64,000 bases of DNA, taken from contig CP075493.1 of NCBI GenBank assembly GCA_021613535.1, positions 12,958,001 through 13,022,000 of the forward strand. The letters are read 5' to 3'. The notes under the pieces are model-generated. The model saw only the letters and a program-made list of their open reading frames with translations. It was not told the DNA's origin and did not search any database. The position numbers and the translations under genes are program-made. Shown here one piece after another: positions 2,584-14,268 of the stretch; positions within the stretch are counted from its first letter, which is position 1; every line of letters begins with the position of its first letter. Origin of the DNA: Adineta vaga. Taxonomy: Eukaryota > Animalia > Rotifera.

Positions 2584-3319
2584 CTAATCTTTGCGGTGTT
2601 TATTCTTGTTTTTTCCTTTCTTATTATAGGTATTATTAACTAAATAACATCGTCGATTATCCACTCGAATAGCATCCCACATCGATTCAAGTAATGACCG
2701 TAAGGTTGGATGACCTAACCGTTCAAAGGGTAATCTACGACCATGATGTTCAGCTTCATATTGAGTACATAGCTCTGTAAATGTAAGTGGTTGACCATCA
2801 TTGTCCTCTTTTGTCGACTTTTGTATCAAATTGATGATGTCCTGTTTGACATTGACATACGTTATAGCAGAATCAGTACTATGCTAAATAGCATTGCATA
2901 ATAATTAGCTGAGAATTAATTTAACTCACTTGTAGTCTGTTCTGATTTTCAGGCAGCGAAGAATCCTTCGACAGTACAGTGGGTGGTATTACGGGATTCT
3001 GCTTATTCGTTGATTTCGAAATCTTTCGCAAGTAACATCTAGCTGGCCATTCAGTGAGATCCATGCGTACGATATCTCTCATTGATGATAGAAAACGTGT
3101 TAATGTCTCATAGCCTAATTCTTGATATGGTAGTTTTTCATTTTCATAAATACGTTCGTATTCTCTGCATAATTCAGTTAATGTCAAACTATCTCTGTGT
3201 GTACTATCATTATTATTATTCGTAGTTACTGTATGTGTAGATAATATACGTTGAATTCGAGCTTTTATTACATCATATATTGGTGAGGATGAAACAGATG
3301 TAGTGGTAGCAGTAGTCAT
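2584..3319 (-). CDS. Small protein (about 229 aa) with two tandem LOTUS/OST-HTH domains
   Basis: Two repeats of the LOTUS pattern: LTLTELCREYERIY..KLPYQELGYETLTRFLSSMRDIV and LTFTELCTQYEAEH..RLPFERLGHPTLRSLLESMWDAI. GT-AG intron 2929-2884 joins the two ORFs in frame. Confidence 0.85.
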
Positions 3320-3607
3320 TTTGCGTAAACTAACATGCGCTTTAGAGACTAACCATACTTTTTATTGTTTGATTAAAGGAATGTAACAGAAGACTGGTCG
3401 TTTATGTAATCAATGAATAATCGAGAAATAATAGCGCACATAGATGTCAGACGAGAACAACGTCTAATTAACAGTGCGATGAGTAGAGAAAATGTAAAAT
3501 AATACGCAAATATCATTGTGAATTGACATACAAAATAACATTTAAAGGATTAATTGACTGTGTAAAACAAAGCGGCTACAAGCACAAAGACTGATTTGAA
3601 AGTATAA

Positions 3608-13600: not shown

Positions 13601-14268
13601 TGAAATGGTTAACACAAAAAATGATAGGTTTCAATGATGTTCATAATACAAGATTTTCATTGATGTTCATTGATTTTCTATTATGTTTACTTTCTGCATG
13701 TGTTCAAAAAGAAGATTATATATATCGAAAAATAACGAATTCTTCTCATTTCAATAAAATTCAATTGATTAAACTCTTAGAAAAGATGGTTCATTATCAT
13801 CCATTTTTTCCAGCACGAGGCAATGCGTTTATTCTAATTGCTGCCATGGATTATGCCGATCATAATGTCATATCGAATGCAATGAATACATTATTTGATG
13901 AAAATCTTGTTAAAGAATATTCGATGATTGCTGTTCCACTTATACATTTATCACCCAATGAATTCATTGATAATCTCTTAGAATCTCTTGAAAATGAAAG
14001 TGCTGTGAAAGCCTATGAAATCTTGAAAATCTTTACACAATTTGCCTTGAATGAGAAAATCGATGCGAATAGTAAATCGAAAATAATCAACTATTTAGTT
14101 CGAGAAATAGGCGAATTTAAATCGAAAAAATCTGTAAGCTATTATTATACAGATATTAAAATTCCATTTACAACAACATTAGAAAATGAATTATATAAAT
14201 CATGGATTAAAATTCAAGGACTTTCGGGTAAAACACAATATTCGATTGGTATTGATGAATCAAAATGA
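7699..14268 (+). CDS. SIR2-like domain + NACHT NTPase + helical-repeat C-terminus (NLR/STAND-like), 2189 aa, intronless
   Basis: SIR2-like motifs VIFVG, IVTTNYD (8065-8079), ILHLYG and LLFIGY. Walker A GHPGSGKTT (9025-9051), Walker B ILVIFEGLDE, ILTSR, LAINP and winged-helix FRFIHRTFQEYLAA. Confidence 0.9.
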   Translation: MVDNLQKLKKDIASNNVVIFVGPDVSVYTTNDETQVSHWKGLIKHGFQQFDRLGQINDKPLTNLDDNKTDINEYVLISNLIKPYLKEQPSVYQTWLINTVGQLFPIKPELIQAIGELKCPIVTTNYDSLLEDTLHKETLTWHEYQNNTSLKDITNYILHLYGHYQNSDSVIISSDDYNQLHNDEFAQSKLRMLVKGKTLLFIGYETDIHDPNFSNVLKWLFNITMINPPIIYKLIRSNNYGSFLENIKEISYGNNFQDLLLFIKNLSSFSSLRHTSLSLAERRESIREKYLNYLIKEYGQVSIFGYANNDINLPLESVYVDLKFDPTHPSIKAMTTVHINEEFRRKLVSPGFFSETEKRKLFQVVTERNAFNPHTIYRDLMIDQWLNVLLSNNQIFSDHEARTIRYKISQLKQNILTENHLKESQQYQIQQAYKEFKHFIILGHPGSGKTTLSKWLVINTAQQCLRKRNMLYDRNDYFHEKIPILIPIWKYVDFVNTSQQKVTLLEFIYENPTFNSTFFTMEERKDLSTWIIECLLHGNILVIFEGLDEVPVHVDRTDLMKEINCLLERGTDYDSKSGKLIHSLYEQKEINNTKNPIIGNRFILTSRIEGNYFEDINFYIPRLTIQDMSNEALKLFCNSYMESIQKISRKENKIDQLYNDIIKNQDIFQLAINPQLASVIAAVYHQYEGKLPEKRIDLYEQAIDNMIEQLIISSTNEQIQFNSIMLWSILQEIAEYLHHKVEGLSEKILKEIIGKCLTSLNLMNTSDIIESLVDIFKYKVGLLNEFGHDSFRFIHRTFQEYLAAKSLIYFNGIERSKEMIYENIQKKIDIPNWRVPLDMTFGILSKYHQNNGLFHYILENLLTNQSILSLIPFVIIDSLNDMYFLSKDIEHDLIRKLAEMLLSDYKNLSGFARLIEHQNLIHFYFSKLKKISYHTTVKWFIEKMIDDNIAPCANIIYHLKWYNPKFHQILLINLHHDSQFCEWPIDSLLRFYSNQIQNNAILTELKFKNALVDNPELIQHINHDSHWLSLIVALYGGYHNYNSERTISEYYALSQFLQLDENIRMPFFFYYQDIWGKDRTANNMVAHMDTTQTNYWREKPLFDQKKIYKESFLTANILELLKEKKSPLVLTKKLRKQIKTQKLVIHEKIEALIALIALGDNDFIQLTLKEEDQTLITYIEHRIDQLISVLKDPIARWSTHINTYLLKIQNNSSIHCKIYLSFIADSGGLPVNTHILANAANTSEEKSTFNAEYFAYKLTSTTTDFTYDIAVIADKLDVFGNSNEIMNSVLKIHNTIQRYRPIRMYPWPLDIFIFKSRDQNDIPIEFFNCLENFHTNVPYLPAAISNMFFAEGYFNRNPELILPVILLHFGIMSTQSERFEIYANLLPELGTKVNIKEFLLEKIHSIHHSYYKARALYQLAEFYDEKCYELLKEAFQTTKNISKSVLKFQILEKIFNVLHYKEVTEKCFIQQVINELILICDTIDNVYDRATASIRLSFYGSGEFRKRYIANAIFTLSQMNRNEEKIEFIIKLKPLVSLYPDLQINFNEIINHMKNKTHHYLIHSYYGRILSAEQLQTDNIELQSLFRLFAQLNDNKISINKIETIDQLWLNVYQDITNQSHIEKLLKLALNTELLLTPLAAIVIDELLQQSKEEMISVLFPYIIKPSNEVLPIVHRWFTDYDHSHQIKNLAAILLVEGKRIFESVIDTIVELITNDNDQMRYRAQRIFQHPERDPKKPSKRISVIGERTLMKIFQHLTKNRHFPRTGAYLRSFFYDLLWDDPIVYMNLLKKVTKLKETNDSTDVQRMFYFNKIKFIDDRTWNLILNSLQSIPYATYIEEVFHSTIVLTQSNQITENDWNNFVRILSTNDRSQFVEKFYIIFTDVAVINLILNEICALTTINDEEDLEIIESKVINEISVQIEDLLQYTYHQIIHIARCNFYVSCELNQAILNILNNIQINNIMMENLMKWLTQKMIGFNDVHNTRFSLMFIDFLLCLLSACVQKEDYIYRKITNSSHFNKIQLIKLLEKMVHYHPFFPARGNAFILIAAMDYADHNVISNAMNTLFDENLVKEYSMIAVPLIHLSPNEFIDNLLESLENESAVKAYEILKIFTQFALNEKIDANSKSKIINYLVREIGEFKSKKSVSYYYTDIKIPFTTTLENELYKSWIKIQGLSGKTQYSIGIDESK

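Follow-up and report, generated by a model that had tools for sequence, protein, structure and literature searches.

The locus

The stretch of DNA analysed here (the window) comprises 64,000 nucleotides (nt) of the bdelloid rotifer Adineta vaga and corresponds to C1:12,958,001-13,022,000 on chromosome 1 of a six-contig, 100.8-Mb haploid assembly with chromosome-scale contigs. Between window positions 2584 and 14268 lie five consecutive genes, encoding a protein with two LOTUS (OST-HTH) domains, two leucine-rich repeat (LRR) proteins, a DUF3825 protein and a large protein joining a SIR2 domain to a STAND-type NTPase (SIR2-STAND). A preliminary description made from the sequence had proposed that these genes form a co-regulated innate immunity module, akin to a bacterial defence island and built partly from foreign genes. 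The five genes are real, as Pfam confirms every domain named in that description at its position, and each of them is probably functional. Their main features, in window coordinates, are as follows.

2584 to 3319, minus strand: gene for a protein of about 215 amino acids (aa) with two LOTUS domains, Pfam OST-HTH matches lying in both exons
3319 to 2930, minus strand: LOTUS exon 1, followed by a GT-AG intron from 2929 to 2842 (88 nt) and by exon 2 from 2841 to 2584; splice sites read from the sequence
3607 to 4643, plus strand: LRR gene 1, upstream member of a pair, starting MDAYKTIFLHVVLY (Pfam LRR_4/LRR_8, repeats, translation)
4796 to 5769, plus strand: LRR gene 2, N-terminus MDQYKMLPILFIIIVGF (Pfam, translations of open reading frames (ORFs), own-genome search)
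6266 to 7219, plus strand: DUF3825 gene, a single exon encoding 317 aa, with a full-length Pfam match; identical to annotated protein P0001
7304 to 7309, plus strand: AATAAA, 85 nt past the DUF3825 stop codon (consensus match only)
7699 to 14268, plus strand: SIR2-STAND ORF, a single exon encoding 2189 aa, stop codon at 14266-14268
7699 to 8538, plus strand: SIR2_2 (SIRim-type) domain (Pfam, alignments to FAM118B and to the bacterial protein P0195, motifs)
8957 to 9798, plus strand: STAND/NACHT-type P-loop NTPase (sub-threshold Pfam matches, motifs, relatives that reach NACHT)
9799 to 14268, plus strand: C-terminal region (about 1490 aa), unmatched in Pfam

Gene order at related loci

To place this arrangement, we compared it with the gene order at three paralogous loci of A. 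vaga and, in other bdelloid-type genomes, at three DUF3825, five SIR2-STAND homologue and two LOTUS loci. At none of these loci does any pair of the five genes occur together, and the synteny in other bdelloids that a single module would lead one to expect is therefore lacking wherever it was sampled. Based on this result, the five-gene adjacency is likely a lineage-specific chance juxtaposition in a fast-evolving part of chromosome 1, and the genes would accordingly be regulated independently of one another.

Within A. vaga, DUF3825 has only one match in the whole assembly, so that none of the three other SIR2-STAND copies can be paired with a DUF3825 gene. Searches (tblastn) of the 30-40 kb spanning each of these paralogues with the LOTUS, LRR and DUF3825 sequences returned nothing, and the relatives of the LOTUS and LRR genes elsewhere in the genome never occur together. 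No homoeologous block could be defined for the window, because its aldo-keto reductase lacks a close second copy (42% identity at most) and its F-box family has at least 104 members.

The other bdelloid-type genomes give the same picture. No LOTUS, LRR or SIR2-STAND gene lies within 7-10 kb of the three DUF3825 relatives (73%, 62% in A. ricciae, and 52% identical), whose neighbours instead encode F-box, glycosyl hydrolase, carboxylesterase, RRM, Zip, ammonium transporter and NUDIX proteins. The LOTUS orthologues of A. steineri and Didymodactylos likewise lie at loci from which the other four gene types are absent.

The bacterial neighbourhoods of DUF3825 also speak against an inherited association. 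Among 80 loci that were fetched, the 73 usable ones have no recurrent neighbour (the largest neighbour cluster has 6 members), and among 127 flanking genes counted by Pfam family none has a SIR2, STAND/NACHT, LRR or OST-HTH domain. The families listed are ABC transporters, HTH regulators, transposases, AAA_21/RloB, Bro-N and recombinases, so that in bacteria, too, DUF3825 is unlinked to the other components of the proposed module.

The LOTUS and LRR genes

The two OST-HTH domains (PF12872) of the supposed tandem LOTUS genes both exceed the Pfam cut-off of 23.8 bits (30.1 bits, E 4.3e-7 in ORF 2921-3319; 25.0 bits, E 1.8e-5 in ORF 2584-2829), yet the ORFs are the two exons of one gene and not separate genes. 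Orthologues were found in A. steineri, where the protein is 59% identical and annotated with two OST-HTH domains, and in Didymodactylos carnosus; the gene thus encodes a small two-LOTUS protein conserved in bdelloids. Relatives within A. vaga lie on chromosome 4 at 14.29 Mb and on chromosome 1 at 4.75 Mb. The searches with the LOTUS and LRR genes used their exons separately rather than a joined spliced model.

The two LRR genes are tandem duplicates from a dispersed LRR family, whose nearest members in A. vaga lie on chromosome 4 at 8.69 Mb and at several other sites. The duplication has a period of about 1120-1129 nt (repeat families D1-D3), and the last, large exons of the two genes, which hold the Pfam LRR matches (within 4110-4643 and 5170-5769), are 52% identical. 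LRR gene 1 contains an in-frame stop codon at 3733-3735 and a change of frame near 4020-4035, implying short introns or decay, and LRR gene 2 changes frame at the homologous point, at about 5129-5164; the exon boundaries are approximate, as splice sites are not fixed from DNA alone. Direct repeats across 3300-7750 consist only of this duplication and of short AT-rich chance matches, and thus offer no shared promoter motif for the five genes. Both LRR genes begin with a hydrophobic, signal-like N-terminus (MDAYKTIFLHVVLY and MDQYKMLPILFIIIVGF), that of LRR gene 2 being probably a signal peptide or anchor, and for this reason both proteins are probably secreted or membrane-bound.

These features bear on the proposal that all five genes constitute a co-regulated innate-immunity module, in which a sensor that binds RNA, an enzyme resembling a nuclease and an NLR (NOD-like receptor) switch would be combined with LRR recognition, which we regard as extremely unlikely. 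The genes are consecutive, all five domain types are found somewhere in immune or RNA-surveillance proteins, and other loci of the SIR2-STAND family carry immune-type neighbours, namely genes for an ADP-ribosyltransferase (ART), TIR_2 and Macro-PARP. However, the lack of any adjacent pair at the other sampled loci is compounded by the opposite strand of the LOTUS gene and by the LRR N-termini, which would place these proteins in a compartment other than that of a cytosolic STAND protein. Animal LOTUS proteins are known mainly as germ-granule/Vasa regulators and not as immune sensors. The choice of domains was, moreover, made post hoc, and A. vaga has large LRR, F-box and STAND families. The proposed division of labour is weakened both by the predicted secretion or membrane anchoring of the LRR proteins and by the replacement of a histidine by tyrosine in the SIR2 domain, described below.

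A similar conclusion follows from the comparison with bacterial defence islands and gene pairs such as the SIR2-containing Thoeris, DSR and Avs/bNACHT systems. The rotifer locus resembles these in having a SIR2-NTPase beside genes that are candidates for sensing or for attacking nucleic acids, but differs from them in that the neighbourhood is not conserved in relatives or paralogues and has no counterpart in bacterial co-occurrence, and in that its genes lie on opposite strands and have eukaryotic structure, introns interrupting LOTUS and LRR. In a region so rich in gene families, clustering by itself is to be expected.

Origin and predicted role of DUF3825

The DUF3825 domain (PF12873) matches ORF 6248-7219 over its entire profile (positions 1-238 of 238, 164 bits, E 5e-48), the coding sequence running from an ATG at 6266 to a stop codon at 7217-7219. 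The rotifer protein keeps the family-invariant residues, with 31 invariant columns common to it and the bacterial members, and carries an N-terminal extension of about 50 residues without a recognised domain. The 17 eukaryotic (rotifer-type) sequences form one clade (Shimodaira–Hasegawa-like approximate likelihood ratio test, 100), which a long branch separates from the bacterial sequences, and identity to the A. vaga protein drops from at least 49% among rotifer-type sequences to at most 39% in bacteria. The family also matches a phage family, phrog_11623, for which no function is known. These data indicate that DUF3825 derives from one ancient transfer out of a bacterial or phage family, as the single clade on its long branch fits one old acquisition. 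Its bacterial relatives (80 loci, 31-39% identical) come from many phyla, and since none exceeds 39% identity no donor phylum can be named.

In being intronless, belonging to a bacterial/phage family, having atypical GC content and forming one bdelloid-type clade, DUF3825 resembles other genes that bdelloids have acquired horizontally, although its acquisition is old rather than recent, with relatives down to 49% identity. Its GC content is 0.42 against about 0.30 around it (about 30% in the region as a whole), and its GC content at third codon positions (GC3) is 0.36 here and 0.36-0.40 across four bdelloid-type genomes, compared with 0.16-0.18 in neighbouring genes. The raised GC3, twice that of the neighbours, has thus persisted despite the old acquisition. 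SIR2-STAND has a GC3 of 0.18, like host genes, and this difference between the two genes suggests that their histories differ.

The function of the family is documented sparsely: the Pfam entry reads 'domain of unknown function' only, and our literature search found no paper mentioning DUF3825. In the 73 usable loci the bacterial proteins are mostly stand-alone (245-290 aa), and the longer forms are fusions to cold-shock or Fic domains. Fusions of Fic/DOC to DUF3825 (449 aa) occur in Collinsella metagenome-assembled genomes (L108:4348-5694 and L112:7380-8726), and two cold-shock domains are present in other bacterial members (L081, L093).

Structure prediction yielded a model with a mean predicted local distance difference test score (pLDDT) of 83; the N-terminal half, when modelled by itself, reaches 92. 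A Foldseek search with the model returned nothing at E<=0.001 and no strong structural neighbour, and a sequence search against solved structures gave no link. In pairwise alignment the top-ranking matches of the C-terminal half (residues 176-300) are to the PrpT, ParE, RelE, HigB, YafQ, BrnT, colicin D and CdiA-CT toxin domains over their whole length, with Z scores of 5.5-4.2 and a root-mean-square deviation of 3.3-4.6 A; the aligner's guide for reliability is Z 8, and the N-terminal half gives the same list of toxins at Z no higher than 3.4. DUF3825 thus aligns with complete RelE/ParE (BECR-fold) toxin domains at Z up to 5.5, but differs from these toxins in having no sequence-level link to solved structures and no antitoxin-like neighbour in bacteria. 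We consider the RelE/ParE-like fold a lead rather than a result. Taken with the cold-shock-domain fusions, this tentative fold match suggests that DUF3825 may act in the metabolism of RNA or single-stranded nucleic acids.

The fusions also raise the possibility that the nearby LOTUS protein supplies in trans the RNA-binding module that is fused to DUF3825 in bacteria, which we judge very improbable. Besides the nucleic-acid-binding cold-shock domains of some bacterial members, it would be consistent with the shortness of the domainless rotifer extension and with the 2.9 kb separating the two genes. Against it, the adjacency is absent at the three DUF3825 and two LOTUS loci of other bdelloid-type genomes, two LRR genes lie in between, and the genes are on opposite strands. 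The association of DUF3825 with OST-HTH domains that the preliminary description had cited was not seen, as fusion or as neighbour, in the bacterial members most similar to the rotifer DUF3825.

The SIR2-STAND protein and its family

The SIR2_2 domain (PF13289) of SIR2-STAND scores above the Pfam cut-off (aa 121-225, 61 bits against 24.5, E 1.8e-16). It is followed by an NTPase whose Walker A (GHPGSGKT, aa 443) and Walker B (ILVIFEGLDE, aa 540) motifs are intact, and whose Pfam scores (nSTAND3 26.7, NPHP3_N 19.0 and NACHT 18.8 bits) all fall below the cut-offs. With regard to the earlier label of NACHT, the domain is a STAND-type P-loop NTPase; the protein's own NACHT score is sub-threshold, and it is close homologues and bacterial relatives that carry NACHT matches, on record or above the cut-off. 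The C-terminal 1490 aa, searched as three 500-aa pieces, match no Pfam family. Language-model searches gave weak leads to bacterial NACHT-associated C-terminal or HEAT domains (scores up to 0.87), and the region is presumed to be a helical sensor.

The ORF is identical to A. vaga protein I4U23_004264, a model of 2265 aa that adds an 82-aa 3' exon across a 743-nt intron. This extra exon is probably an artefact, because the paralogues end where the ORF ends. The 82-aa stretch is supplied by a small ORF at 14898-15245 on the plus strand, with a hydrophobic segment and no Pfam match, which probably represents a small gene in its own right or an artefact of annotation.

A search with the N-terminus found three further full-length-type copies in A. 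vaga. The copy on chromosome 5 at 4.95 Mb (C5:4954667 onwards) is 65% identical and its frame is broken after residue 1274; those on chromosome 3, at 4.29 and 4.36 Mb, are a near-identical inverted pair, 61% identical to the window copy. This pair (C3:4290777-4292870, minus strand, and C3:4359795-4361888, plus strand; about 65-70 kb apart, branch lengths 0.003-0.005) looks like a recent large inverted duplication. All Adineta copies fall into one clade with 100% support, within which the window copy, the chromosome-3 pair and the others take no supported order, and the window copy thus arose by duplication inside the genus. On this tree, it is placed as an Adineta-specific paralogue of a bdelloid-wide SIR2-NACHT-type STAND family.

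An exhaustive profile-free search with SIR2-STAND recovered 3077 relatives. Outside the rotifer family, the best matches have E values of 1e-38 to 1e-26 and 26-37% identity, for the most part within the SIR2 domain, and SIR2_2+NACHT(+HEAT) proteins are among them. Certain SIR2-NACHT relatives are encoded on plainly bacterial contigs (L128, L129), beside TetR, sigma-70 and Na+-NQR genes, and others bear bacterial names (Kordia, Planctomycetota). The nearest non-rotifer relatives that can be placed are thus bacterial SIR2-NACHT proteins, a statement that covers only the matches with a taxon, most having none, and that is read from the ranking of the search matches. With regard to the claim of a partly foreign cluster, DUF3825 bears it out as a single eukaryotic clade within a bacterial/phage family, whereas for SIR2-STAND it extends to relatives that are bacterial where placeable. 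Our literature search on bdelloid SIR2 or NACHT genes found nothing relevant.

Among known systems, the bacterial SIR2-NACHT(-HEAT) proteins have an architecture in common with SIR2-STAND and a SIR2 domain 31-37% identical to it. The eukaryotic SIRim-NLRs ('clade A' SIR2-NACHT/NB-ARC-repeat proteins of animals and fungi) show the same order of SIR2_2 domain, STAND NTPase and long C-terminus, and the combination of SIR2, NACHT NTPase and repeats in animals and fungi has been described (bioRxiv 10.1101/2024.09.18.613514); unlike the repeats of SIRim-NLRs, the rotifer C-terminus matches no known repeat family. Human FAM118B/SIRanc is the best solved-structure match of the rotifer SIR2 domain (E 4e-6), at 29.5 bits compared with about 110-148 bits for bacterial SIR2-NACHT proteins. 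Among curated defence models, PADLOC gave no real match (only a marginal one to MkoA over the P-loop, E 0.0036) and the NCBIfam antiphage models only EruA, at 18.8 bits against a cut-off of 1000.

The SIR2 domain keeps its catalytic Asn (TTNYD, aa 123-127). The His equivalent to FAM118B H206, part of the ThsA-type H-x-H-G motif, is Tyr in the window copy (ILHLYGHY, aa 157-164), a difference from FAM118B that both chromosome-3 copies share. Residues N163 and H206 of FAM118B were mutated together to test catalysis (bioRxiv 10.1101/2024.09.18.613514), and this His has been discussed as catalytic (PMC12700824). This His is present in 87 of the 89 non-rotifer relatives that have the motif and in 18 of 34 such members of the bdelloid family, the other 16 having Tyr, Phe or Gln. 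Wherever the motifs are found in the bdelloid SIR2 family (P0121-P0163), the Asn is retained, as is the other His, which precedes the variable position by two residues. The chromosome-5 copy retains the catalytic His (ILHVHG), and about 125 of its residues are missing from the alignment. Given the change of the canonical His to Tyr, cleavage of NAD+ by the window copy may be weak, altered or lost, and many members of the bdelloid family would either not be NADases or use a different chemistry.

Most likely, SIR2-STAND acts alone as an NLR-like switch, in which ligand sensing would fall to the long C-terminal region and oligomerisation would be driven by the intact P-loop NTPase, the output coming from the SIR2 domain at the N-terminus.

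Upstream genes and a possible pairing with DUF3825

Genes lying close upstream of SIR2-STAND homologues recur in Adineta. In A. ricciae, one locus (L030) has an ART gene 293 bp upstream and a TIR_2 gene downstream, and a second (L032, CAJNOJ010000208.1) has an F-box-like gene 216 bp upstream. The A. steineri locus (L028) has an F-box-like gene of about 570 aa 1.7 kb upstream and a Macro-PARP gene downstream. The F-box-like partner also lies 195 bp upstream of the chromosome-5 copy of A. vaga, and the ART partner upstream of the chromosome-3 copy tested (4.29 Mb); neither is found beside the window copy. The two Rotaria loci have no close upstream gene.

Further observations concern these loci themselves. 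On CAJNOJ010000208.1 the F-box-like gene (568 aa) and SIR2-STAND (2209 aa) form a tandemly duplicated pair (8079-16630 and 21000-26630), the two F-box-like copies being 94% identical. The genes beside SIR2-STAND homologues include NAD-linked or immune-type ones, namely ART and TIR_2 in A. ricciae and Macro-PARP in A. steineri. Rhomboid genes, paralogues with 73% nt identity, lie near both the LOTUS and the SIR2-STAND loci of A. steineri; we rejected them as a shared marker, none occurring within 20 kb upstream of the window or chromosome-5 copy.

Several points weigh against the reading of the locus as an accident of gene order. As noted in the preliminary description, DUF3825 and SIR2-STAND are single-exon genes on the same strand, and the measured gap between the DUF3825 stop codon and the SIR2-STAND ATG at 7699 is 479 bp. 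Bdelloids use spliced-leader trans-splicing, which leaves room for a shared transcript. Other Adineta paralogues are likewise preceded by a nearby gene on the same strand (195-293 bp away, or 1.7 kb in A. steineri), and two such pairings are conserved across species, which could hint at partner genes. In addition, the homologues sampled from other species include no orthologue of the window copy, and conservation of the pair was thus judged from the DUF3825 side only.

On these grounds, DUF3825 and SIR2-STAND could be an A. vaga-specific two-gene unit, co-transcribed or co-regulated, in which DUF3825 would be an accessory or effector of the STAND switch. To the orientation and short distance can be added the loss of the catalytic His from the window copy, which would leave room for an outside effector, the alignment of the C-terminal half of DUF3825 with RelE, ParE, colicin D and CdiA-CT toxins, and the close upstream enzyme or adaptor genes of other Adineta paralogues. 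We nevertheless consider such a unit unlikely. The DUF3825 relatives in three other bdelloid-type genomes have no SIR2-STAND neighbour, bacterial DUF3825 is never beside SIR2/STAND in our sample, the Rotaria SIR2-STAND genes lack a close upstream gene, and the toxin fold match lies under the aligner's reliability (Z<8). The AATAAA 85 nt past the DUF3825 stop codon is possibly a separate polyadenylation signal for that gene, and short intergenic spacers are ordinary in the compact A. vaga genome.

A broader version of the same idea is that Adineta SIR2-STAND sensors without the catalytic His have outsourced their output to a linked, co-oriented upstream enzyme, which would be the ART in the chromosome-3 lineage and DUF3825, possibly as a RelE-like RNase, in the window. 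This we hold to be distinctly improbable. If it were true, positions 6266-14268 would be an A. vaga-specific animal sensor-effector pair assembled from foreign parts.

Surroundings of the cluster

Chance juxtaposition, the reading we favour, is in keeping with the surroundings, as this region of chromosome 1 is rich in expanded families and foreign-type genes. The gene flanking the cluster has the following coordinates.

804 to 2495, plus strand: F-box ORF at 804-1661, then an ORF at 1854-2495 (weak Pfam F-box match)

Its family has at least 104 copies in the A. vaga genome (own-genome search, E<=1e-10). We considered whether it could be the remnant of an ancestral F-box and SIR2-STAND pair split by insertions and rejected this, as it belongs to so large a family and has only 24% identity with the conserved F-box-like gene that accompanies the chromosome-5 SIR2-STAND paralogue. 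Elsewhere in the window there are FG-GAP, ART-TPR, aldo-keto reductase and further expanded families. The ART-TPR gene (46571-48703, plus strand) encodes an ADP-ribosyltransferase (ART/ADPrib_exo_Tox) fused to tetratricopeptide (TPR) repeats and is about 35% identical to the ART partner of the SIR2-STAND genes of A. ricciae and chromosome 3. An expanded family without a Pfam match occupies 17438-22216 (minus strand) and 33706-37691 (plus strand), and members of it, 25-45% identical, also surround the chromosome-5 SIR2-STAND copy.

Implications

A conserved immune cassette assembled in an animal from bacterial defence parts would, if true, be a striking parallel to prokaryotic defence islands. 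The genes at this locus are more likely ordinary neighbours, from which it follows that function in bdelloid genomes should not be deduced from gene order alone. The value of the locus then lies in its single genes: DUF3825, which appears to be an ancient and conserved bacterial or phage gene in bdelloids, and SIR2-STAND, which represents a SIR2-NACHT-type family found throughout bdelloids. The closest relatives of this family that can be placed are bacterial, and about half of its members have lost the SIR2 catalytic His.

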